Source of the DNA: Cyanophora paradoxa CCMP329
Lineage: Eukaryota > Plantae > Glaucophyta
Assembly (NCBI GenBank): GCA_004431415.1
Contig: QPMI01000281.1
Location: forward strand, 1-64,000
Length of the DNA: 64,000 nucleotides
Direction of reading: 5' to 3'
The position numbers and the translations under genes are program-made. This document shows, in pieces, positions 1-51,498 of the stretch; within the stretch, counting starts at the first letter, position 1, and the number at the start of each line of letters is the position of its first letter. A model generated the notes under the pieces. That model was not told the DNA's origin and did not search any database. It was given only the letters and a program-made list of their open reading frames with translations.

Positions 1-3000
1 TCAAGGAGGGCCTCGCCAAGGAGGGCGGCATGCTCGACACCGACGAGGAGCTCTTCCGCCGCTTCACCCAGCAGGTCCCCGGCGCCCCGCGCCCCCCGCC
101 CGCCCCCCGCCGAGCCCGCCGCGCAGGTCCAGCGCAACCTGCACGTCATCTTCACGATGAACCCCGCCAACCCCGACTTCACCTCCCGCCACCAGGCCCG
201 CCCGCCCGCCCGCACCCTCCCTCTCCCGCTGCCCCTGCCGCCTTCGAACGCCGCGGCAGACGAGCCCGGCGCTCTTCAACCGCTGCGTCATCGACTGGTT
301 CGGGGACTGGTCCGAGGCGGCCCTCCACCAGGTGCCCCCGCCCCGCCCCGCCCCGCCCCGCCCCGCCCGCCGCGCCCCTCGGCGGCCGACGGGGGCGGCA
401 GGTCGCCTTCGAGTTCACGCGGACGCTGGAGCTGGACGACCCCGCGTACGCGCCCCCCGAGGGCGTCGAGCTCCCGAGCCTGGGCGGGGCGGGGGCCCCC
501 GGGCAGCGGGAGGCGCTCGTCTCCTGCATGGTCGCCATCCACACGTCGGTGGCGGAGGTGAGCGGGGCGCTGGCGCGGCGCACGGGCCGCTCGCACTACG
601 TCACCCCGCGCCACTTCCTCGACCTCATCCGGCACTACGTGGCGCTCTACCGGGAGAAGCGGGGCGAGCTGGAGGAGCAGCAGCTGCACCTCAACCTGGG
701 CCTCCAGAAGCTGCGCGACACCGAGCAGCAGGTCGCCGAGCTCCAGGGCCAGCTCGCCCGCCAGGAGGCCGAGCTGGAGGCCAAGAACCGCGCCGCCAAC
801 GAGAAGCTCGACCTCATCGCCCGCAAGCAGACCGAGGCCGAGCGCGACAAGAAGGAGGCGCAGGCGATGGCCGCGCAGGTCGCCGCCCAGCGCCTCCAGA
901 TCGACGAGCGCAAGACGTGCGCCCCGCGCAGCCGCCGGCCGCCGGCCGCCCCGCCCGGGCGGGGCTGAGCGGGCGGGGGGCGCGCAGGCGGGTTGCGACG
1001 GACCTGGCGGAGGCGGAGCCGGCGGTGCGGGAGGCGCAGAGCAGCGTGATGGGGATCAAGAAGAGCGCGCTGGACGAGCTGCGCTCGATGGCGAACCCGC
1101 CGGCGCTCGTGAAGGTGACCCTCGAGGCGGTCTGCCTCATCCTGGGGCAGGACAAGGGGGACCTCTCGTGGGACGCCATCCGCCGCCGCATCCGCGAGGA
1201 GACCTTCATCGCCTCCGTCGTCGACTTCCGCACCGAGAAGGCCCGCCCGCCCCGCCCCGCCCTCCGCCCCGCGCCCCGCCCCCGGCGAGGCCATGGCGCA
1301 GCTGCGGAACGCGACGCGGCACTTCGTGGAGAAAGAGTACATGGGCAAGGCGGACTTCACGCACGCCGCCGTCGACCGCGCCTCCAAGGTCGCCGGGCCC
1401 CTCTTCAAGTGGCTCTCCGCCCAGCTCCACTACTCGGACATCCTCAACCGCATCGAGCCGCTCCGCAACGAGCTCGCCGCCCTCGAGGAGCAGTCCCGCG
1501 ACATGGAGCTCGCCTGCGCCCAGCTCGAGGAGAAGGCCCGCGCCCCGCGCCCCGCGCCCCTCCGCCTCCTTCCCCGCGCGGGGCGCCTGAGGGCGGGGGC
1601 GGGCAGGTTGCGGAGATCGAGGGGGCGATCGGGGTCTTCAAGGGGGAGTACAGCGCCCTCATCGGGGAGACGCAGGAGATGAAGGCGGAGATGGGCCGCA
1701 TCCGCGCCAAGGTCGACCGCTCCATGGCCCTCATCCGCTCCCTCGCCTTCGAGACGGCCCGCTGGGAGGAGGGCAGCGCCGCCTTCGCCGCCCAGATGGC
1801 GAGCCTGCCCGGGGAGGCCCTCCTCGGCGCCGCCTTCCTCACCTACATCGGCTACTTCGACGAGGCGCACCGCCGCCAGCTCCTCACCCGCTGGCGCGCC
1901 CGCGCGGGGGACCTCCGCCTCCGCGCCCGCCCCGAGCTCAGCCTCGTCGAGTACCTCTCGACGCCCGAGCAGCGCCTCGAGTGGCACGCCTGCGGCCTCC
2001 CCGCCGACGACCTCTCCGTGGAGAACGCGGTGCTGCTGGAGCGGCACGGGCGCTTCCCGCTGATCGTGGACCCGTCGGGGCACGCGACGGCCTTCCTGGC
2101 GGCGAAGCTCAAGGCGCGGCGGCTCGCCTCGACCTCCTTCCTCGACGAGGCCTTCCTCAAGAACCTCGAAGCCTCGCTGCGCTTCGGCTGCCCCCTCCTC
2201 GTCACCGACGTCGAGGGGTACGACCCCGTCCTCAACCCCGTCCTCAACCGCGAGGTCCACAAGACGGGCGGGCGCGCCCTCATCCGCCTCGGGGACCAGG
2301 AGATTGACTTCAGCCCGTCCTTCGCGCTCTTCCTGAGCACGCGGGACCCCGCCGCGCACTTCCCCCCCGACCTCTGCTCGCGGGTCACCTTCGTCAACTT
2401 CACGGTGACGCCGTCGGGCCTGCACGCCCAGTGCCTCGCCGCCGTCCTCTCCGCCGAGCGGCCCGACGTCGACGAGAAGCGCCGCGACCTCCTCCGCCTC
2501 CAGGCCCGCCCCGCGCCCCGTCCCCGCCCCCGCCCCCGCCCCCTCGTGACGGCGGGGGGGGCAGGGGGAGTTCCGGGCGCGGCTGCGGCGGCTGGAGCAG
2601 CAGCTGCTGGGGGCGATCTCGGAGAGCAAGGGGAACCTGCTGGACGACGCGTCGCTGGTGGAGACGATGGAGGCCCTCAAGCGCGAGGCCGCCGACGTCA
2701 GCGCCAAGATGGAGCAGGCCGCCGACGTCATGCGCGACACCGCCGCCGTCTCCGAGTCCGCCCCCCGCCGCCCCTCCCCCGCCCGCCCCCCGCCCCGCCC
2801 GGCTCACGGGCCCGTGCCGGCGCAGGCTGTACGGGCCGGTGGCGGCGGCGAGCACGCGCCTCTACTTCGCCGTCGAGTGCCTCGCCGAGGTCCACTTCCT
2901 CTACCAGGTGCACCCCGCACCGGCCGCGCGCCCCGGCCGGCCTGAGCGCGGGGCAGGTCTCGCTGCCGACCTTCCTCGAGATCTTCGCGGGGGTCCTCGC

Positions 3001-5914
3001 CGAGGGGAAGGGCGCCGGCCCCGCCGAGCCGGCCACCCGCATCGACGCCCTCCTCTCCTCCCTCTTCCGCGCCGTCTGGCGGTGCGCGCGTCGGCGGGGG
3101 CGCCCCGGGGTACATCCCGCCCGGCCTGAGGGGCGCGGCGCGCAGGCGGGTGGGCCGGGGCCTGCTGCAGCGGGACCACCTCCCGTTCGCGCTCCGCCTG
3201 GCGCAGATCCGCCTGCAGGGGACCCCCGACGAGTTCGGCGACGCCCTCCTCGAGTTCCTCACCAAGGGCCCGCCCCATCGCCTCGCCCGCCGCCTCGGCC
3301 CCGCCCCTTCCCGCCCGCGCTGAACCGCCCTCGCTCGCAGGCGTGGCGCACGGGGCGGCGGCGCCAGCGGTGGAGGCGTCGCGCCTGCCGGAGGCGATGC
3401 GGACGGAGGAGCGGCGGGCGCAGCTCGCGCGCCTGGCCGCCCTCCCCGCCTTCGGCCCGTCGTGGCCCACGCCTCGGACCCCGCCAACGCCGACGCCTGG
3501 CGCGCCTTCCTCGCCGCCCCGGACGCCGAGAGGTGCCCGAGCCTCCCTTCCTCCGTCGTCCGCCCCGCCGGCCCCCGACGCCGCGCAGCGCGGTGCCGGA
3601 GTGCTGGGAGGGGCCGGCGGCGCCCCTCTCGCCGGTGGCGGGGCGCTGCGGCGGCTGCTGGTGGTGCGGGCGCTGCGGCCGGAGCGCGTGGTGGCGGCCG
3701 GCTGGCGCCTGGTGGCGGCGGTCTTCGGGGAGGACTTCATGCAGCTGCCGCTGCAGGCCGACCTCGCCGCCGTCGTCGAGCGCGAGGCCGCCGCGGGGCA
3801 GCCCCTCGTCCTCGTCTCCACCCGCGGCCACGACGCCAGCGCCCGCGTCGAGGCCCTCGCCGCCGCCGCCGGCCGCCCCGTCTCCAGCGTCGCCATGGGC
3901 TCCCCCGAGGGCGTCGCGGCGGCGGAGCGGGCGGTGAGCGCGGGGGCGCGGGAGGGCCGCTGGGTCCTCCTCAAGAACGTCCACCTCGCCGCCGGCTGGC
4001 TCGCCGCCCTCGAGAAGCGGCTCCTGCGGCTCCAGGCGCACCCCTCCTTCCGCCTCTTCCTCACCAGCGAGCTGCACCCCGCGCTCCCGGCGCCCCTGCT
4101 GCGCGCCTCCCACGTCCTCCTCTACGAGGCGCCCGTCGGGATGCGCGCCGCCGTGCAGGGCGCCCTCGCCGCCCTCCCCGCCGAGCGCGGCGAGCGCGCC
4201 CCCGTGGAGCGCGCCCGCCTCCACTTCCTCCTCGCCTGGTTCCACGCCCTCGTCCAGGAGCGCCTCCGCTACTGCCCCCTCGGCTGGTCCCGCCCCTACG
4301 AGTTCGGCGACGGCGAGCTGCGCGGCGCCCTCGAGGCGCTGGACGTCTGGGTCGACGCCGCCGCCGCGGGGCGGCCGCACGTCGACCCCGCCAAGCTCCC
4401 CTGGCGCGCCCTCCGCACCGTCGTCCTCGCCTGCTACGCCGGCAAGGTCCGCCCTCGCGCGCTCGCCGGCCCCCAGGCGGGGCGCTGAGCGGGCGGGGCG
4501 GGGCAGGTGGACAACGCGTTCGACGAGCGGCTCATGGCGGCGCTCCTGTCGCGCCTCCTCGTTCCCGCCGCCTATGAGCTCGCCTTCCCCCTCGTCCAGC
4601 CGGCCCCGGGCGCCGCCTCCCTCCTGGGCGCCCCGGAGGGCACCGCCCGCCCCGCCTTCGCCGCCTGGGCGGGGCACCTGCCGCCGATGAACCCGCCCAC
4701 GTGGCTCGGCCTGGCGGGGAGCGCGGAGGGCCGGCTGCTGGGCGCCCTCGGGGCGCGGGCGCTGCGGACGCTGGCGCAGCTGCAGGGGGCCCTCGACGAG
4801 GACGAGGAGCTCGCGTACGCGCCGGCCGCCGGCCCCGCCGCCCCGCACCACTCCCTCGAGGCCGACGCCCGCGCCTGGCTCGCCGCCCTCCCGAGCGCCC
4901 TCCCGCCCTTCGCCGCCGCCGCCGCCGCCGCCTCCGATCCCATCGCCCGCTGCCTCCTCCGCGAGCATTCCGCCGGTGCGCCCCCGCCCGCCGGGCCCGC
5001 CCCCGCCCGCCCCGCGCGGCCCCTGAGGGGCGGGGCAGGGGCGCGCGTGCTGGCGCGGGTGCGGGCGGACCTGACCCTCGCGGCCGCCGTCTGCGCCCAC
5101 TCCGCCCGCCCCACGAACGCCTCCCGCGCCCTCCTCGCCGCCCTCCAGGCGCCCCTACCCCCCTCCCATCCGCCCCGGCCCCGGTCCCTCACCCTGCGCT
5201 GCAGCGGGACGTGGTGCCTGCGGAGTGGCGCGAGGCGGCCGGCGAGCGCGGCGCCGCCGCCCTCTCCTCCGTCCACGCCTGGGTCGCTGACCTCGTGCGG
5301 CCGCCGTGCCCCGCCCGCCGCGCCGCCATCGCGCGCTGAGGGAGCGCGGGGCGCAGAGAGCGCGGCTGGAGCAGCTGGCGGGGCTGGCGAAGGCGGGGGG
5401 CGCGGGGGAGCTGGGGGCGGCGGCGCGGGCCGGCGTGTGGCTCGGGGGCCTCTTCGCGCCCGAGGCGTACGTGACGGCGACGCGGCAGGCGGTGGCGCAG
5501 GCGGAGCGCTGGCCCTCGAGGCCCTCCGCCTCTCCCTCGCCGTCGGCGCCCCCGCCGCCCCGGTCCCCGCGCCTTCGCCCTCCGCGGCCTCGCCCTCGAG
5601 GGCGCCGCCTGGAGCGCCCCGGAGGGCCTCGTCCCTCCGACGCCCTCGCCTCGCCCCTCCCGGCCACCGCCCTCTGCTGGGAGCGCGCCGACCCCGCCGC
5701 CGACGCCGGCGCCGCGGCCGACACGCTGCTGGCCGTCGCCGGCGGGGACGGGGAGGGGGCCCCCGCCGGGGGCGCCGTGCAGCTCCCCGTCTACCTCGAC
5801 GGGCAGCGCGCGCAGCTGCTCTTCGCCGCCTCCCTCCCCGCCTCGCCCTCCCTCGGGCCCTCCCTCTGCCTCCAGCGCGGCGCCTGCGTCACCGCCTGGC
5901 AGGCCCCCCTTTAG
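1..5914 (+). CDS. DYNC1H1: Cytoplasmic dynein-1 heavy chain, 3' portion (end of AAA4, stalk/MTBD, AAA5, AAA6, C-terminal domain); 5'-partial, about 17 introns
   Basis: Spliced motifs VQRNLHVIFTMNP, TSPALFNRCVIDWFGDW, HYVTPRHFLDLI, LNLGLQKL, DLAEAEPAV, ELRSMANPP, RFPLIVDPSG, PDLCSRVTFVNFTVT, GRWVLLKNVHLA, FLLAWFHALVQERLRY. TSPALFNRC..WFGDW fits dynein-1 rather than IFT dynein-2. Stop at 5912-5914. Confidence 0.95.
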
Positions 5915-6321
5915 GCACCTCGCGCCCCCCGCACTCAGATGTGAGCCTCGTGCGCATCTGATCATGACACGTGATGTCCGCTGGCGGCTAGCTAGCAGCA
6001 CATCTGTGGTCAACGCGGGGCGACTCGGCAAAACGGGATTCACTCGAATTCGAATTCAGGACTCGGGATTCACGTGAATCGCCGGCAGGTACAAGACGCA
6101 GGTCAGCCCATAACTCCGAGGGCTCATCGGCTGTAGCTGCATGCGCAGAATCTCATTAAAAATTGCTTGGAAGCTTAACGTTGAATTTAGTTACGTATAC
6201 TTGGTGATCCCAGAAGCCAAATACTCAGTAGTAGTACGCAAGGAAGACTGCACATGCATATGTACACGGACAACTTGGCAAGATTCAATGATTGACAGTA
6301 AACCGCTGAGCCTGAGATTAA

Positions 6322-7978
6322 TTGGGGAAGGACCCCCTTCCCCTTCCCCCACTTGGGGGTGTTCGGGTGCCCACCCTAGGCCAAAATGAAATGTCCCGAC
6401 CTCCCAAAACCCGGGTTTTCTCGCCGGATCCTAGGAAGGCATGTCTCTAGGAGTCCGGAAACATGTTCCGGGAGATCCGGGTCCCGTCGGGTCGACCAGG
6501 AATGGGCAATAACACATTTTCACAAAATGCGATCTAGCGCCTCACCAAGTGGCGATATATCTGCCGGACCGAGTGCGCCTGAATGCGCCTGATACGCCCG
6601 ACGATTCATGTCATACATGCCGAGACCGGAGGGCAAAGGGTGGTCCGCTAGGCCGCCTCAAGTACCTGTTGTACCGGACGCCGAAAAAACGCGCTCCTGA
6701 GAGTTTCGGCCTATCGTGTTGTAGTACCCGTGCTTTAAGCCGGCAAGCTAGCCGACAGGCTTGCTAGCTGGCCAACTAGCTGAGCTCCGGCTGTAGGCTT
6801 GCTGCAGCTGGCATGGACTTCAGCCGCACGACATCAAGCGCGTGGCGTCCGTCGACATCGTACCGGCCGCGGCACGTGCGAATGCGTCTGCGCCCGCCGA
6901 GTGCGCGCCGAGGTTCTGCTCTGCTGCATGGATCGTTCGCCCGGGCCGGGCCGCTCGAGCCTCACTCGCTCGTGCGCGCGCGCCGCGCGCCAGGTACGAA
7001 CTCGTGCGCTCGCCCCGCGCGCCACCTCCGCCGCGCCGCCCTCTCACTTCCCTTACACTTCGAATTCCTCTCGAGCTCACTTCCTCTCACTTCTCACTTC
7101 CTCTCGAGCTCACTTGCAGCAGGCGAGACGCAACATCGCATCTGCAGCTGTTCCATCGGTGCGCATGCTGCACAGCTGTGCTCGTCCGACGGTCGCTTCC
7201 TCTGCCGCAGGGGAAGGGTCCGGTACCGGTTGCAATTGCACGACCCATGCTTGCCACCCTCAGTCTTGCACCCGCATGCAATCGACCGGGTCGAGCCGCT
7301 AGCAAGCATCACACCGCCTCCAATTGCAAGACCTCGGCCTCCGCCTCCGTTGACGGCGCCGGCGCGCCCGTCCGCCCGCGCGCCTTGCTGCGCTCCTCGT
7401 CCGCGCTAATATAAGCGCCTGCCGCTGCGCCTCCGCCCGCGCCAACGCCGGCCGGCAGCGCGGCCGCCGGGCTCCTCCCGCTCCTCGGGGGCGGAGGCGC
7501 AGCGGACGGCAGCGCGGCTCGCCTGGCGGGGCGGAGGCGCGGCGGGCGGCGCGCGGCGCAGCTCGCCGGGTGGGACGGGAGGCGCTGCGGGCGGCGGAGT
7601 GGCTATCCGGGCGGGCGGAGGCGCGGCGGGCGGCGGCGCGGCGGGCGGCGGCGCGTCTCGACGGGCAGGGCGGAGGCGCGTTCGCGATCGGGGGCGACGC
7701 GGCTCGCAGGGCGGGCGGCTCGCAGGGCGGGGCGCCGCGGCGGAGGCGCGGCGGACGGTGGCGCTTCTCAAGATCTAGTCCTCCGCTGAGCTAGATCTTG
7801 TCCTCCCCCACCCCCCCCCCCCCCCCCCATGATCGAGCTGCTATCAGAGTCCACACTATCTCGGCTCAAAGATAACGTGACCAGCTGCAGGGGTGAACTT
7901 TCCTGCTCATGATCAACCTTTAGAGGTCCTTCCCCTCCAACAGGGGCAGTGCAACTGCAGTGTCCCTGTTCCGTTCAT
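6322..7978. repeat. Copy 1 of a ~1.66-kb near-identical direct repeat (period 1719 bp)
   Basis: Matches 8041-9697; differences seen are mostly single-base indels; duplicated ORFs at 6386 and 8105. Confidence 0.95.
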
Positions 7979-27471: not shown

Positions 27472-29200
27472 ATGTTCTGCGCGGGGATCCTGCCGCGCGG
27501 CAGCGGCGTCGCCAGCGGCGCGGCGCTTAGCCTCCCGGTAGATGCGCGCGCGAGGAGCTATCAGCGCGCGCCGGCAGCAAGCGCCTTTCTTGGCCAGGCC
27601 GTCCGGGCAAAAACGTTCCTGCACACGCCCCAGCGGATCGTGCGCTTCGTCGGACCAGTATGTGCGGCGGACGAATTCATGATTAAAAAGTCAGTTCCAG
27701 TTTGCTCGTTTGAGCCACGTGCCTCGCTGAGCGGCGCACAGGCTGCAGTCGATCGAAAAGAACTTCGACGAGCTCACGCGCCGGCTCGGAGATCCTGAGC
27801 TTGCATCCAACCCCGATGAGCTCATGCGCGTCGCTCGAGCTCGGTCTGAGCTTGAAGAGGTTGTCACTGCCTTCAACCGCTACAAGGAGGTCCAAACTCG
27901 TGCGTGGGTTCCGCCGCTTTCGCGGCCCGCATTCCTCAGCTGATTTTCCGCGCTCGCAGAAATCGAGGATGCTAAAGTTCTCATCGAGGAGAGCGGCGGC
28001 GATCGTGATCTCGTGGCGATGGCAAAGGAAGAATTGTCCATGCTCGAGGACGAGCTGGTGGGTCACGTTACCAGGCCACAAGCCAGGTTGATTGTGCTTA
28101 TAATCCCCGGACAGGTCCAGCTCGAGAAGGATGTGAAGCTCATGCTGCTTCCAAAGGACCCGCTTGATGAGAAGAATGTTCTCCTCGAAATCCGTGCTGG
28201 AACAGGAGGTGATGAGGCCAGCATTTGGGCTGGAGACCTTGTTCGGCTCTACACGAAATATGCAGAGACGCAGAGCTGGAAGGTTAAGCTGGTATCAGAG
28301 TCGGAAGGCGAGCATGGGGGTTACAAAGAGTGCATTCTGGAAGTCCAGGGCGAAAAGGTCATAAGCTAGTGAGCTCCAAAAATCGCTTAAAGCACTAAAT
28401 ACATGTTGCAGGTTTACAGCAAGCTTAAGTGGGAGGCTGGCGTCCACAGGGTTCAGCGTGTGCCTGCAACGGAGTCGCAGGGTCGGGTTCACACAAGCAC
28501 AGCAACAGTTGCAATCATGCCGTTCGTTGATGAGGTGTGAGAATCTTCTTTGAATTCAACTGGATCACTCTTCCCCCTCGTGTGCTTATTGCTCCGTGGG
28601 CAGGTCGATGTGCATATCGATCCAAAGGATATAGAGTTGAAGACAGCGCGGTCAGGGGGTTCTGGTGGGCAGAACGTGAACAAAGTCGAAACAGCCGTCG
28701 ATCTTATTCACAAGCCCACCGGCATCCGCATTTTCTGCACACAGGTAACCCGTGTTCTGGCGGAAACCCTGCAGCTGCCTTTGAACTCGAGAGCAGGAGC
28801 GGTCTCAGTTGCAAAATCGTGCGCGGGCAATGGAAATTCTGCGGGCTAAGCTTTTCGAGATCAAGCTTCAAGAGCAGCAGGCCGAAGTTCGTTCTCTGAG
28901 GCAGTCGCAAGTGGGCACTGGTGCCCGTTCGGAGAAGATCCGAACTTACAACTACAAGGACAACCGTGCCTCTGATCATCGCATCAACCAGAACTTCTCG
29001 CTGCAGCAGTTCCTTGATGGTGCAGGTCCTGCATTTTTTGAAGTCATATTTATATTAACACAACCACAGGCGATATTGATGATGCTATTCAATCAATGAT
29101 TCTCCGTGACCAAGAGGAGCGCCTTGCGGTACTTTCCCCACCTCGCAGAATGACGTTGGTTCTGACGTCGTTATGCCAGGCACTTGCCGCGTCAGTCTAA
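27472..29200 (+). CDS. prfA: Plastid-type peptide chain release factor 1 with transit-peptide-like N-terminus
   Basis: [37 protein letters not shown] (PxT), [16 protein letters not shown] (GGQ), [14 protein letters not shown]; N-terminus [20 protein letters not shown] is Ala/Ser/Arg-rich. Confidence 0.93.
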
Positions 29201-29499: not shown

Positions 29500-30189
29500 T
29501 CAAGAGCTAGGGGTCTCCCCGAGGTTCTGCTGCATGGACGCGAGGCTGCCCATAAGCGCATTCTTCATGGCCTCCTGAGACCGGTTGTATGCATCCTTCC
29601 ACGCCTCCTCGAGGGCAGCAGACAGGGCCTCCGCGCCGAGTGCGACAGCCTCGTCGTCAACAGAGACAGAGATCGGCTGAGACTTGCCGTCGACTGCAAA
29701 GGAATATCAAGCTTAGCTCTCTGATGAAGGCAGCGCAGCGAAGAAGTTTCGCACCGGTGACTTTGACGTGGCCATCAGCAGCCTCGCCAGTAATGCGCTC
29801 CTCGCCGAGCTTCGCCTGCAGAGCAGCAGCCTGCGCCATTCTCAGCGGCTAGGTCTACGAAAGCGCGCAACTGAAAAACACGCACGTTCTTCTGTGCCTC
29901 CTGCATCGCCTTCATCATGTTCGCCATGCCGCTGCGATCGAGTTTAGATATTTTGGCGCCCCGGGAGGGAAGCAGCCCGATCTTCGCACCCAAGGCCGCC
30001 GAAGCCACCGCCCTCCTTGTTGCCGCCGCCGAAGAGGCCAGCGACCGGGGCCTCATAGGCGAACCGCGATGGCGCCTCGGGGGCCGCGCGCCGGATGGAA
30101 GCAATACGCTCCCGGCTAACGAACGAGCTGTTGAGCGCGAGCGCCTGCTTAGCGCCTGAGGCAAGCGGGACGGGGCAGACGAAGGCCAT
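29500..30189 (-). CDS. Plastid-targeted YbaB/EbfC family protein (STIC2-like)
   Basis: MAFVCPVPLASG transit-peptide-like start; GLFGGG..GMANMMKAMQEAQK, AAALQAKLGEERITGEAADGHVKVT, EAMKNA. Confidence 0.85.
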
Positions 30190-30440
30190 TGTTTCTAGTA
30201 CCCGTCGAGGGGGGTGGGGCGTCTCTTGTTCTTGCATACGTCTAGATACGAATGCATAGGAAAATGCATTTGCATACGTCTAGATCGATATCTAGATCCG
30301 CGGCCGATATCGATCGTACTGCTCCCCGGGTCATTGCTCCATTTTCAAAGTTGACAAGAAATTGATTAAAAGAATTCGAATTGAGAAGACTTCGATTTGA
30401 GTTGCTGCTGGACAGTATGCAGGAGAATAGCGAAACCCTA

Positions 30441-33400
30441 TTAGCTGGAAAGGGAGCGAATCTTGCTCTCAAGAGCATCGAGCTCCTCCAGTGTGTTGGC
30501 CCCCTCCACCTTCCAGAGGCTTTCGGCAGGCACTTGGAAGCCCTCCACAATCTTGCCAGCAGCTACAAGTTGTGAGACGAAATCTGTCGCGTAGTACTCG
30601 TATGCGACAGGATCCTCCTTTGTTTGCGTGGGAGAGATGGATGCCAAGGCCTCCAGATAGTCGCCAGCTCGGACCATCACAATGCCAGAGTTGAACTCGC
30701 CAATCGAACGCAGCTGCTCCTTCTTGAAATGAGAGCCATCTGCATAGGTGCGTTCCTCACCATCATCCATCTTCTCAATGACCTTGCGCTCCACAATGTC
30801 AATCACAGTACCGCCCGTGCCACGAACAATGCGTCCGTAGAAACCAGCATCAGGAAGAACGCCAGTGACAATAAGGCCGCTGTACTTTTCTCCATAGCGA
30901 GCCTTGTTGGCAGAGTGAGCAGTGATGATCTGTTTGATGAGAGCTGCATCGACGCCAGGGTTGTCGGCGTACAGGACGAGGACATCTCCCTCAAAGGCAC
31001 CAAGGCCCTGAAGTGCCAGGAAGACAGCATGGCCTGTCCCAAGGCGCTCCTGCTGCAGGACATACGTGTGGCCATCCACACCGAGAGTCTTGGTAACCAG
31101 ATCACTGGCAAAGCCCACGACGACAATAGAGTCCAGGCCGACTTCTGCAACAGCAGAAAGGGGCTTCTCTGCCATTGGTCGCCCCAGGAATGGGTAGATG
31201 ACCTTCGGCGTGTCGGCCTTGAACCGAGAGCCTTGCCCAGCTGCAAGCATAACAGAAACCATGCCATTCTGATTGGCAGCCTCGACATTGAATGGCCGCC
31301 CAGAAGGGGGAACGATTCCAGAGGCGACGACAAGTTCAGACAGACTCATCTTGGCAACGTCCTTCGTAGAGGGGAAGGGGGCCGGACGGGGCCCAATACC
31401 AGCACAGATATCGTAGACAGCACCAGACACCTCGTAAGCAAGGGCCTTCGCCTGCTCCTTCGTAGGTGCCTCCGCGAAAACACGAATAATGTCCTCTGTG
31501 CCTGATGCACGTGCAAACGAACGACCACCAGAGTACTTTTTCACTATGGTATCGATCGCATCTTGCAAACCAGGCGGATCTGGTTGCAAAAAAGTGTTTG
31601 TTTTTGAAACCCAGCATGGGAAGGCAACGAAGACTTACTAACTGCGCGGGTCTCGATCTCGTTTGTAGTAAGGACGTAGCGGTCTGCCACCTTGACCTTC
31701 AGGAGAAGGGATGGCATGTCCTTGTAAATGGCATCCCAGTCGGAGGCAGACCAACCGTTGTGGGCCAGAACAGCTTCCACAAGGAGCAGGTCGGAGATAG
31801 CATCGCCAACTGCTTGGTTCATTAGATCGTGGATGCCGACCAGAGTCTCAAAAGCATGCTGGGCGTCCGAGTTCCTAAGGCTTTGGTCAGGATTCAAAAG
31901 TCTTTATCAGGAGAAATCATGCTCGCAAACAACGCACCCCGCCTGCTTTGCTGCAGCCTGCTTGATCTTCTCGATCGCAGAGTTCTGGAACAGAACAGTC
32001 CCATGTCCATTAGATTCGAAATAGAGGCCAATGTCGAAAGACACGGCCCGATGGTGCAAGTGCCGAACACCTGCAGCTGCAGTGAACCAAAGACAGCATT
32101 GTGCTACAGGCAGACAGAGCAAACCAGTGGGTGACCAGTTGACAGGCACGTTTAGGTGCTTCGTGATGTACTTGGTGGACGAGCCGTTGGCATACGCTGT
32201 CTGCACAACACCGATGGAGACCTCGTCGGCGCAACCGAGCCTTCGGAGCTGATCGATAATGAACTTCGTGTAGAGGCACATTATCTTGTCGCCATCAAGA
32301 AGATGGAATTTGCCGTCATCGTCTACGTGGCCAAACACTACACGATCAACGTCTCCATCGATGCTGGCCATGCGACGACCCTTGTCGATCGCGCCATCGA
32401 AGCCACGGGGCAACCGCTTGTTGACATTGACGTAGTCCGCCCCCACCTCGTAGTTGACCATAGCGCCATCCCCACAATTCCGAACCTCGACCTTCAGCAC
32501 GTCGGCGATCTCCTTGGCAAGTCGGGATATCTTAACGCCTCCGACGCCATTTGCGCAGTCGATCACAAGGCTGTTCTCCCAGTGATCTTGGCTAGCGGAT
32601 GGCCGCAGAGAGATGAGGCGCTTGAATGCCGACGCGAGCTTGGAATAATAGTCATCCTCGTTGAAGATCTTCCCACCGTTGAGGTTGGTCTCTTGAACGA
32701 TGAGGTGCAGCTGGGGGGTCGTGAGCTGCTCAAAGGACACAGCCTTGGCGGACGTGAGCTCTACGCCAGCACGGACGAGCTCGAGGAAGTGAGCGCCCGT
32801 GGTGCGGTTGTCGCGAGCGAGAAAGACAGTAGAGGGGGCTAGAAGGTCGAGGTTCAGCTCGGCTGCGACACGCCGAAGCGTATCAGGTAGCGCATCGTTC
32901 TCCGCGTTGCAGATCGCTGTGGCGACGCTCTCCCAGGACGACTCCAACATCTCGCCCGAAACGTCGATGAGCTTAGCTCCGTTGTCACCTGTGGTGGGGT
33001 TCGAACGCAAGGCGCGTGGCACGGGTGGATCTGGAGCTCACATGCGGGGTTGTGCGAAGCAGTGATCATAACGCCAGTCACCTTGCCGCCGCTCTTCTTC
33101 GACCGTCTACGGCACAGAAATGAAAGAGTTAGCGCAGAGCGCCCCGCGCGTGCCGAAGCGAGGGTTGCGCACAGAGCGGCAACGATGCCAAGCCGGAACA
33201 TGACGGGCTCCAGATCGTCGGCATGCCCGCGGAAGCCGATGGTTCCATAGCGGAACTGCTTGCCCTCAGGCTTCGGATACTTCTTCGCTGCTTCGAGAAC
33301 CGCGTCCATCATGCGCGCCAGCTGCTCCTCGTCTCCGGGGGTGCGTGCCGCGGTCGTGAGCGCGGCCGAAGGTGTCGGTTGGGATGCAGAGCTGGTCGCA

Positions 33401-33695
33401 AACTGCCGCGCCGCTACGTAACGCGCCGGCGCCGGGCGCGGGCTGCTGAATCCGAAGGATGCGGCCCGCTGCCTGCGCGCGCTGTCGGCACCAGAGTTGA
33501 GGCCAGCCGCGGCGCGCGGCGCTTACCGGAAGAGCCGAGCGACGGCTGGCTGAGAGGACCTGCGCCCAAGCGCGCTCAGCGCGCAGCGAAGTGTGGAACG
33601 GTGCAGCGCCAGCCGCACCGGAGCGAGGATCGGATCACGTTGGACGGGGCTTCTTTGCGTGCTGCAACGGGATGCAGCAACGAGACGAAGGGCAT
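30441..33695 (-). CDS. Fusion: presequence + phosphoacetylglucosamine mutase (PGM3/AGM1) + GlmU-type GlcNAc-1-P uridyltransferase domain (no acetyltransferase domain)
   Basis: Mutase motifs RYGTIGFR, MITASHNP, IDCANGVG, SIDGDVDR, GLYFESNGHG, NQAVGDAISD, RSFARASGTEDIIRVFAEA. Then, in the same exon, MLAAGQGSRFKADTPKVIYPFLGRPM, QQERLGTGHAV, LVLYADNP, YGRIVR, EFNSGI, EYYATD, VEGANTLEEL. Upstream exons 33619-33695 and 33527-33559 splice in frame through GT-AG introns. Confidence 0.9.
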
Positions 33696-34028
33696 CGAAT
33701 CGAAAACCGGTTCCCGCCGCGTGAATCCGACGAACTGCCCCCCCTTTGCCTTCTTCCCCCCCTTCCCCCCCCCCCCCCCCCCCGCCTTTTGTATTTGGTC
33801 AATTGGAAGGCCTCTCCGGGTACGTAGTTCTGCAACGACCGGGCAGCAAATTCGAAATCGTTTCCCTGAAGCGCGGCCCCCGGCCCTCACAGCGTCTAAA
33901 TAGCATTCGTAGCGCCCGACGCCGGCTTCCAGTCCGGCCCCAAGGCACTCCTAGTTAGCTAAGCGCCACGGCCGCGGGGGCAGTTAGCTAAGCGCGACGG
34001 CCGCGGGGGCAAACATTCGGCCGGCCAA

Positions 34029-49404: not shown

Positions 49405-49461
49405 GTTATAATATTATTTATGAACCAGATCGACCAGACCAGACCAGTGCTAGGGATCTAG

Positions 49462-51459
49462 GAGCGCATTCTGGTCCAAAATTAATACAGCAATTGGGTT
49501 GGGAATTATGTGTTGTGTGATGGCGCAGCGAGGGGGGCAGCGGGCTAGGCGACAGATAGCAGTAATGGAGGTTGCATGCTACTGAACACGATACATTAGG
49601 CGGCGTCTAGCCCCGTCACCATCGGTTTTCGACCACTGCGGGCGCGGGATTCGCGGCGCGGGATCGGCAAGACAGCTACACGAGTGCTAGGGAATCGGCG
49701 CGCATAGGTCCTTTTTGCTAGCGGATCCCCGCTGCGCGCCCGCGCGCCAAGGTCCCGCGCGCCCGCTTGCGGAGGGGGGGGACAGCGATTCCGTCATGCA
49801 GTCCGCGCTGCTAGCGCTCTGGTCGCGTTATGCATGCGCGGTACAGCGCAACGATTGCGCTGTGTACCGCTTCGGGTCCTCCGCGCTGCCGCCGCCGCGC
49901 CAGCGCCGGTTTTGGGGCTGCCCAAAACCGGGGGGACAGCGTTACGAGGCACCAGCTCCAGCCACACATCGCCCGGTGTGCGAAACGCTCGAGCGCGTCG
50001 CACTCCCCAGGCGCCGCCGCTATATCTGGCGCCTCCATCTGGCCCCGCTCGCCGCCGCAGTACACGCCGCACATCGCGGCACATGTACAGCTACTGCTAT
50101 AGGTCCGTGGCTCACTTTGCATCGTGCTCGGTTCGCTCACCGCGGGCGATCCGGCGCGGCGCATCTGGCGGTTCGTCGCCCTCGCGCCGCCGCCGCATGT
50201 CAACGCGATCCCGTGCGCGCTCCATCACGAGCCGAAAAGCCGGCGCCGAGGTCTGCACACGCCCGCGCCGCCCCCTGCGCCGAGCGCCGACCGCGGCCTG
50301 CCCGCGCTCATTTGCGCAGGGCGATCTCCGTTACCGCGCGTGCTCTGGGGGCACCTCGCCGTCGACGCATGGGACTCAATGGCTGCTGGCGTCTTGCGCA
50401 GTCAGAGCCAGGATCGCCGACGAGCTGCAGCATGCCTCCTCCGCACGTGGTTGTGGCGAAGCGCGCGCGCGCAGGGCATGGAGGCGGCATGCTGCAGCTC
50501 GTCGGCGATCCTGGCTCTGACTGCGCAAGACGCCAGCAGCCATTGAGTCCCATGCGTCGACGGCGAGGTGCCCCCAGAGCACGCGCGGTAACGGAGATCG
50601 CCCTGCGCAAATGAGCGCGGGCAGGCCGCGGTCGGCGCTCGGCGCAGGGGGCGGCGCGGGCGTGTGCAGACCTCGGCGCCGGCTTTTCGGCTCGTGATGG
50701 AGCGCGCACGGGATCGCGTTGACATGCGGCGGCGGCGCGAGGGCGACGAACCGCCAGATGCGCCGCGCCGGATCGCCCGCGGTGAGCGAACCGAGCACGA
50801 TGCAAAGTGAGCCACGGACCTATAGCAGTAGCTGTACATGTGCCGCGATGTGCGGCGTGTACTGCGGCGGCGAGCGGGGCCAGATGGAGGCGCCAGATAT
50901 AGCGGCGGCGCCTGGGGAGTGCGACGCGCTCGAGCGTTTCGCACACCGGGCGATGTGTGGCTGGAGCTGGTGCCTCGTAACGCTGTCCCCCCGGTTTTGG
51001 GCAGCCCCAAAACCGGCGCTGGCGCGGCGGCGGCAGCGCGGAGGACCCGAAGCGGTACACAGCGCAATCGTTGCGCTGTACCGCGCATGCATAACGCGAC
51101 CAGAGCGCTAGCAGCGCGGACTGCATGACGGAATCGCTGTCCCCCCCTCCGCAAGCGGGCGCGCGGGACCTTGGCGCGCGGGCGCGCAGCGGGGATCCGC
51201 TAGCAAAAAGGACCTATGCGCGCCGATTCCCTAGCACTCGTGTAGCTGTCTTGCCGATCCCGCGCCGCGAATCCCGCGCCCGCAGTGGTCGAAAACCGAT
51301 GGTGACGGGGCTAGACGCCGCCTAATGTATCGTGTTCAGTAGCATGCAACCTCCATTACTGCTATCTGTCGCCTAGCCCGCTGCCCCCCTCGCTGCGCCA
51401 TCACACAACACATAATTCCCAACCCAATTGCTGTATTAATTTTGGACCAGAATGCGCTC
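49462..51459. mobile_element. ~2-kb foldback element: ~980-bp near-perfect inverted arms, ~37-bp spacer, TAG on both flanks (candidate non-autonomous DNA transposon)
   Basis: TAG|GAGCGCATTCTGGTCCAAAATT ... AATTTTGGACCAGAATGCGCTC|TAG; mirror ORFs (49811..50203- vs 50719..51111+); spacer ~50443-50479. Confidence 0.85.
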
Positions 51460-51498
51460 TAGTGTCCCTGATAGACCAAACCATGGCCATGGCCAGAC

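Follow-up and report, generated by a model that had tools for sequence, protein, structure and literature searches.

Phosphoacetylglucosamine mutases of the PGM3/AGM1 family are known from eukaryotes such as yeast (PCM1) and Arabidopsis (DRT101), and the step after PGM3 is assigned to UAP1/AGX1 (PMC10087520). Bacteria possess the bifunctional GlmU, in which an N-terminal uridyltransferase of two lobes precedes a C-terminal left-handed beta-helix acetyltransferase; the beta-helix trimer is dispensable for the uridyltransferase activity (PMC10087520, whose two-lobe layout we used for assignment). Published gene inventories of walled plastids begin at MurA or name only glmS (PMC6704402, PMC9434261, PMC12681378), leaving the UDP-GlcNAc supply of these plastids uncovered. 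Here we describe a gene of Cyanophora paradoxa that fuses a PGM3-type mutase with a GlmU-type domain and provides a testable enzyme for this supply, already detected in cyanelles. Both kinds of enzyme are known, while the fusion, its probable plastid targeting and its red-lineage distribution were not found in the literature searched. No description of the fusion was found in the open-access literature searched; some key Cyanophora reviews and chapters lay outside that search, and a prior mention is not excluded.

The gene lies on the reverse strand of the window, the whole stretch of 64,000 nucleotides that was analysed, with the following features:

30441-33695, minus strand: whole coding sequence, 948 amino acids in 8 exons (RNA contigs of four studies for the splice joints, local model, EukProt)
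33695-33619, 33559-33527, 33472-33173, 33106-33042, 32988-32125, 32070-31938, 31874-31639 and 31579-30441, minus strand: the eight exons, the last including the stop
33618-33560, 33526-33473, 33172-33107, 33041-32989, 32124-32071, 31937-31875 and 31638-31580, minus strand: seven GT-AG introns of 53-66 nt, spanning 31580-33618
30443-30441, minus strand: stop codon TAA
30320-30440, minus strand: 3' untranslated region, its outer limit approximate, since contig ends (30320-30383 in the RNA) need not be transcript ends
33313-33695, minus strand: presequence of about 90 amino acids over exons 1-3, probably a muroplast transit peptide (composition, Phe3, and a cyanelle proteome protein with a matching N-terminus)
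33307-33312, minus strand: two in-frame methionines, Met91 and Met92, at the point where cytosolic PGM3s begin in the alignment (initiation here is not demonstrated)
31376-33312, minus strand: PGM3/AGM1 phosphoacetylglucosamine mutase, amino acids 91 to ~638, four domains (Pfam PGM_PMM_I, AMG1_II, AMG1_III and PGM_PMM_IV; motif comparison)
31250-31346, minus strand: pre-domain element of about 33 amino acids, a short helix followed by PPSG[RK]P (alignment, pLDDT about 90)
30444-31249, minus strand: predicted GlmU-type GlcNAc-1-P uridyltransferase domain, amino acids ~681-948 (PDB sequence matches, NCBIfam, structure model, Foldseek, signature comparison)

The first in-frame ATG of the fusion gene, at 33695, opens a spliced frame of 948 amino acids, and the seven intron joints were identical in RNA contigs from all four studies. 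Single spliced contigs of 2975, 2990 and 2945 nt, assembled in three independent studies, run from ~33720 to ~30340-30380 and contain this whole frame, and every RNA contig starts at 33716-33736, upstream of the first ATG. The fusion gene is thus real and is expressed as one spliced mRNA. All sampled words of the stretch were present in 14 sequencing runs, 12 of them possibly the source of the DNA itself, and six runs guessed to be RNA held about 80% of the sampled words. The EukProt entry for the fusion, Cyanophora paradoxa tig00001206_g7496.t1 (P0001), has 925 amino acids; a false intron removes residues 573-595, and with them the first part of the mutase phosphate loop. The region 31570-31502 of exon 8 is continuous in the RNA contigs, and the intron of g7496.t1 there is unspliced. 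Remote searches were run with individual exons and with P0001 as a stand-in, and the joined 948-residue model was analysed locally only.

The first-pass annotation, made from the sequence alone, had proposed a PGM3 and GlmU N-domain fusion in one frame within exon 31579-30441. This held: the exon encodes PGM_PMM_IV (E 1e-9) and, without a change of frame, NTP_transf_3 (E 2e-14), the exons upstream of it encode PGM_PMM_I, AMG1_II and AMG1_III, and all the motifs it quoted are on the minus strand. The check that it had proposed, RNA across ~31260-31400, was met by spliced contigs spanning the junction between the domains with neither splice joint nor variant, and no transcript ended or spliced before the GlmU domain. 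Its gene start at 33312 failed, since two more spliced 5' introns (33618-33560 and 33526-33473) add 90 residues and place the ATG at 33695; the transit peptide, and hence the muroplast context, had been missed. A referee might still ask whether adjacent genes, an assembly chimera or a fusion with one half reduced to a dead relic could account for the locus, and these readings are all but excluded. Their sole support is the strongly diverged mutase half of the Cyanidiales orthologues. Against them, no stop or intron separates the domains, spliced contigs from several studies span both, the active sites of both halves are intact in Cyanophora, and the junction in Rhodelphis is alike, with 78-88 amino acids from the phosphate loop to LAAG. 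The spanning contigs together with the conserved Rhodelphis junction refute the two-gene and assembly-chimera readings.

The mutase half met the family criteria of PGM3, with TASHNP, DGDxDR, FE[A/S]NGHG and RxSGTE motifs all present. The catalytic ASHNP contains Ser154 (33057), followed by the DGDVDR metal loop (369-374), the FESNGHG sugar loop (464-470) and the RASGTE phosphate loop (593-598). The PGM3-specific AMG1 domains II and III were found along with PGM_PMM I and IV, AMG1_III reaching E 9e-56 on P0001. From these motifs, and without an assay, the mutase half is inferred to convert GlcNAc-6-P to GlcNAc-1-P.

In the C-terminal domain, the GlmU motifs LAAGQGSRFK..PKV (681-697), LGTGHAV, YGRIVR, EFNSG, EYYATD and GANT follow in the same frame on the minus strand. 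The best PDB sequence matches were GlmU N-domains (E 1e-23), and the best NCBIfam match was to positions 3-237 of the 452 in the GlmU model (E 3e-38), with other nucleotidyltransferases at least 20 orders lower. An alignment-based structure model reached pLDDT 94 and, in Foldseek, its top 37 matches were all GlmU structures, with RmlA, GalU and MurU ranking below by about ten orders of magnitude; the two-lobed fold is thus nearest to GlmU among nucleotidyltransferases. A search of the ESM Atlas returned generic NTP-transferase clusters only. The pyrophosphorylase fingerprint L-x2-G-x-G-T-x-M-x4-P-K is met by LAAGQGSRFKADTPK, in which S replaces T, F replaces M, and the equivalents of R18 and K25 are retained. 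Of 25 signature positions of E. coli GlmU, 23 are identical, Q79 and G104 being the sole differences; R688, K695, Q745, D775, E833, N866, Y899, T901 and N931 correspond to E. coli R18, K25, Q76, D105, E154, N169, Y197, T199 and N227. In GlmU, D105 and N227 are Mg ligands, and Q76, G81, T82, G140, E154, N169, Y197 and T199 contact GlcNAc or uridine. Equivalents of all of these are retained. The domain is therefore most probably a GlmU-type uridyltransferase, predicted without any assay to convert GlcNAc-1-P and UTP to UDP-GlcNAc. Grouping with another NTP-transferase family, which the annotation had named as a refuting outcome, was not observed, GlmU being best by both NCBIfam and Foldseek.

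No left-handed beta-helix acetyltransferase follows: the frame stops at about profile position 237 of 452, the RNA contigs end 60-120 nt further, and the domain ends within the first turns of the helical arm. The short pre-domain element is common, by alignment, to the Cyanophora fusion, to stand-alone proteins of red algae and to a bacterial-looking metagenome protein, P0010, and is part of this GlmU subfamily rather than of PGM3. A single-sequence fold of the near-full protein (pLDDT 37) carried no information on domain packing or channelling.

Other identities for the C-terminal domain were tried and rejected. It is not a bifunctional GlmU (TIGR01173), as the beta-helix is absent and the score was 132 bits against a cut-off of 367. 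UAP1/AGX1 was ruled out by the lack of a UDPGP Pfam domain and of any UAP1 among the PDB sequence matches or the top 50 structural matches. MocA/IspD was likewise rejected, and the JGI label 'phosphomannomutase/MocA' on a Cyanidiales fusion is contradicted by its active site. A preference for another sugar-1-phosphate, namely MurNAc-1-P as in MurU recycling, Glc-1-P or GalNAc-1-P, would place the enzyme in wall recycling or in the synthesis of another nucleotide sugar. In its favour, identity to characterised GlmU is merely 30-35%, the stem to the clade is very long, two insertions lie in the region of the sugar lobe, and no member of the clade has assay data. We consider it very unlikely: the equivalents of E154, N169, Y197, T199 and G140 in the sugar lobe are retained, MurU, RmlA and GalU fall far below GlmU in the Foldseek ranking, and five other genomes have the fusion to a GlcNAc-phosphate mutase in conserved form.

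An N-terminal Phe is a hallmark of cyanelle transit peptides (PMC4510345). The presequence of the fusion begins MPFV, with Phe at position 3, and its residues 1-80 contain 21% Ala, 16% Ser, 12.5% Arg and one acidic residue, so that the criterion for a cyanelle precursor (Phe within the first 10 residues of an Ala/Ser-rich, acid-poor extension) is met. In Supplementary Table 2 of PMC4510345, row 8098_cds:1892 has the matching N-terminus and is annotated solely as phosphoacetylglucosamine mutase; the cyanelle 6-phosphogluconate dehydrogenase in the same table starts MAFVSPSPV. The row belongs to a set of 276 proteins that were quantified, in two or more of three replicates, in intact as well as periplasm-free cyanelles (PMC4510345). 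Its abundance was low, about 1.7 fmol, and the domain from which its peptides came is not stated, leaving contamination possible. The supplements of PMC4510345, where the old gene model lacked that region, contain no peptide from the N-terminus expected for the mature protein. We conclude that the presequence is probably a Phe-type transit peptide for import into the muroplast (cyanelle), with import and the processing site inferred.

Met91-Met92 may be the ancestral start and could perhaps yield a cytosolic isoform. This leads to a rival reading of dual location, with the two reactions unchanged. The long form would be sent to the muroplast or mitochondrion, and a shorter one starting at Met91/92 would remain cytosolic as a general source of UDP-GlcNAc for N-glycans, GPI and O-GlcNAc, in keeping with an ancestral function in the cytosol like that in Rhodelphis. 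For it speak the alignment of Met91-Met92 with the start of cytosolic PGM3, the absence of the presequence from the fusions of Rhodelphis and the stand-alone domains of red algae, residues 59-64 of the extension (R-Q-F-A-T-S), which we take to resemble a mitochondrial R-3 cleavage motif, and a C. paradoxa LpxA gene, another consumer of UDP-GlcNAc. Against it, all RNA contigs start upstream of the first ATG, a second PGM3 locus is apparent, and the protein was detected in the cyanelle proteome. We regard dual location as unlikely, while noting that it is compatible with the muroplast reading.

Judged by motif, the genes beside the fusion appear to be of plastid type: one for a nucleoid protein resembling YbaB/EbfC, its transit peptide being MAFV-type (29775-30190 of the window, minus strand), and one for a class 1 peptide release factor (about 28000-29200, plus strand). 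Between the 3' end of the fusion and the start of the YbaB-like gene, at 30232-30285, two exact copies of a 16-nt motif, 38 nt apart, flank a short palindrome, a possible promoter element. Elsewhere in the window, 49452-51469 is a near-perfect palindrome of about 2 kb (arms about 1 kb, 98.5% overall with long stretches of 100%, 37-nt spacer at 50443-50479), either a foldback element or an artefact of long-read assembly.

Returning to the muroplast reading, the nuclear-encoded precursor would enter the muroplast stroma and shed its transit peptide of about 90 amino acids. The PGM3 half, using phospho-Ser154 and Mg2+, would shift the GlcNAc-6-P phosphate to C1, and the GlmU half would convert GlcNAc-1-P and UTP to UDP-GlcNAc and PPi, supplying MurA and MurG for the peptidoglycan wall. 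Acetylation would come first, in the eukaryotic order, so that stromal GlcNAc-6-P would be needed and a GlmU acetyltransferase would not; the GlcNAc-6-P may come from a stromal GlmS and a GNA1-type acetylase, or be imported, for example by a UhpC-type hexose-phosphate carrier. In the genome paper (PMC6704402), the table of peptidoglycan genes lists eukaryotic-type glmS and murA-G, with glmM, glmU and g7496 absent, and a second C. paradoxa gene, tig00000237_g20475, was there matched to a PGM3-annotated transcript. That gene may serve the cytosol as PGM3, a possibility resting on annotation, as its sequence was not examined. Because of the transit-type presequence, the presence in the cyanelle proteome, the lack of glmM and glmU in the gene list and the second PGM3-annotated gene, the fusion is the best candidate for stromal UDP-GlcNAc supply.

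The two-step route that the annotation had inferred, from GlcNAc-6-P through GlcNAc-1-P to UDP-GlcNAc, is supported by the domain calls and retained residues, because GlmU residues and PGM3 motifs fit consecutive steps; activity remains inferred. Conservation of the fusion in Rhodelphis and Cyanidiales also speaks for this reading. Its explanation for the loss of the acetyltransferase, that the PGM3 product is already acetylated, is logical and not shown, and the donor possibly lacked the domain already. One spliced mRNA, intact catalytic motifs and presence in the cyanelle proteome are demonstrated. That the fusion is a two-step UDP-GlcNAc enzyme of the muroplast stroma and the main source of wall precursor is likely, with both activities, channelling and the main-source role inferred. 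Points against a wall role are the low abundance in the proteome and the lack of an identified stromal source of GlcNAc-6-P, and the architecture requires neither plastid nor wall, as Rhodelphis fusions have no extension at all.

Relatives were sought in 1.84 billion representatives and twice in a 90% collection; the searches were not exhaustive and many matches were unnamed. Two Rhodelphis species, R. marinus (52% over the exon) and R. limneticus, carry the fusion with no N-terminal extension. It was also found in three intron-free, syntenic Cyanidiales-type loci with a strongly diverged mutase half:

L002, 5001-8228: Cyanidiales-type fusion
L003, 5001-8264: Cyanidiales-type fusion
L007, 2049-5894: Cyanidiales-type fusion

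Each of the three bears an Arg-rich extension of 75-100 amino acids with an early Phe. The Cyanidiales mutase half has EPNGH for EANGH and an altered N-terminal YGTxGFR motif, a hint of a changed substrate, and in the GlmU half of two of these fusions Tyr replaces the equivalent of N169. A stand-alone domain, again without the beta-helix, occurs in Galdieria, Porphyridium, Timspurckia, Rhodosorus, Gracilaria, Agarophyton, Pyropia, Porphyra and Cyanidium. Two Cyanidiales assemblies contain both forms: in ERZ1300892 the contigs with the fused and stand-alone forms have coverages of 128.3 and 128.7, the stand-alone copy falling in the Cyanidium caldarium cluster, and the second organism is represented by JGI 3300051397, SRR18192416 and SRR17356570. 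The architecture, which the annotation had thought undescribed, remained so in the literature searched, yet it is not unique to this genome. Database labels for the fusion or its domain read mutase, 'GlmU' or 'phosphomannomutase/MocA'. C. paradoxa was the sole glaucophyte species among the matches, and no green alga, plant or other eukaryote appeared among the named ones, an absence left unproven by non-exhaustive searches.

Among green plants, the liverwort PGM3s P0287 (Riccia) and P0296 (Calypogeia) have Ser-rich, acid-poor N-terminal extensions of 72-87 amino acids, missing from the PGM3s of Lactuca, Eruca and Cymbomonas. They may point to a parallel plastid-targeted UDP-GlcNAc route in green plants with walled plastids.

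Phylogenetic analysis placed the eukaryotic GlmU domains in one clade on a long stem (100/100), joined by P0010, the sole non-eukaryotic member (45% identical, pre-domain element present). Its locus is:

L001 (SRR12113385), 1-7947: bacterial-looking, intron-free locus of P0010

P0010 adjoins a giant protein of 2,200 amino acids with SIS and response-regulator domains and repeated GDG motifs. A position of P0010 as sister to all eukaryotic domains was not rejected (p-AU 0.36), and no relative was found among GTDB genomes scanned with the clade motifs and with P0010. P0010 may point to the donor lineage, or it may itself be a recipient. The red-algal stand-alone copies formed a sub-clade (90/88) nested among fused ones, which favours an initial fusion with later fission or duplication in red algae. 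The Cyanidiales fusions are fast-evolving and basal in the GlmU tree, and their position may be an artefact. Monophyly of the six fused PGM3 halves was neither recovered nor rejected (p-AU 0.48) in a tree that was opisthokont-biased, lacked red-algal stand-alone PGM3 and had a very long Cyanidiales branch, and is thus uninformative. Junction lengths of the fused proteins are alike, at 78-111 amino acids. Many bacterial relatives are already ~250 amino acids long without a beta-helix, so the donor may have been without the acetyltransferase.

The annotation had left the donor as either cyanobacterial or other, and no sign of cyanobacterial affinity was found for the GlmU domain. PRK14360, which we take to be the cyanobacterial GlmU model, ranked 7th to 10th among GlmU models with each of the seven eukaryotic domains that were scanned. 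This disfavours an endosymbiotic (cyanobacterial) origin without excluding it; the GlmU-domain trees took in no labelled cyanobacterial GlmU.

The fusion is likely an ancient character common to glaucophytes and the red lineage. A bolder reading, on which we find it hard to come down on either side, is that a single fusion of host PGM3 with a non-cyanobacterial GlmU preceded the split of glaucophytes from the red lineage (Rhodelphis and red algae) and replaced the endosymbiont GlmM/GlmU. Cyanophora and Cyanidiales would then retain a plastid-targeted copy, for peptidoglycan and, in Cyanidiales, for lipid A, and most red algae would have split the fusion, keeping the bacterial-type domain as a cytosolic UDP-GlcNAc pyrophosphorylase. 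Cyanidiales plastomes encode glmS, lpxA and lpxC; the open-access literature searched gave no confirmation of these plastid genes. If true, this reading would fill in the missing first step of wall synthesis in plastids and would also give a rare genomic change, shared between lineages, that bears on the unresolved branching order of Archaeplastida. Being fused in Cyanophora, Rhodelphis and Cyanidiales and split in other red algae, the gene offers an ancient character for the glaucophyte/red/green branching question (10.1101/2025.05.06.652364). Its distribution suggests a bacterial-type enzyme for red-algal UDP-GlcNAc synthesis, and one polypeptide for two steps has potential use in enzymatic UDP-GlcNAc synthesis.

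Compared with known systems, the Cyanophora protein is a chimera of host and bacterial parts in what is probably an endosymbiont's job. It has in common with eukaryotic PGM3/AGM1 the four domains and catalytic motifs, with identity of its mutase half to animal, fungal and plant PGM3 of up to 47%, but it adds the transit peptide and a C-terminal uridyltransferase, whereas known PGM3s terminate ~35-48 amino acids past the phosphate loop. With bacterial bifunctional GlmU it has in common the N-terminal uridyltransferase fold and active site; unlike that enzyme, it has no beta-helix, is joined to a mutase, and has both the pre-domain element and a ~19-residue insertion after the E154 equivalent. 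UAP1/AGX1 performs the same predicted step after PGM3 but belongs to a different protein family. The red-algal stand-alone 'GlmU' proteins (Porphyridium KAA8498821, Galdieria KAK4528291, and those of Gracilaria, Rhodosorus and Pyropia), named by automatic annotation, fall in the same clade at 39-51% identity and likewise lack the beta-helix, but are not joined to PGM3 and have no evident presequence. A bacterial protein of like layout is P0030 (MAG GCA_964549305; L089 4081-6933), with its relative P0034, in which a phosphohexomutase is followed by a GlmU N-domain without beta-helix. Its mutase, however, is bacterial and GlmM-like without AMG1 domains, and its GlmU domain groups elsewhere among bacteria, which argues for an independent fusion and for a mutase and GlmU N-domain logic that evolved more than once.
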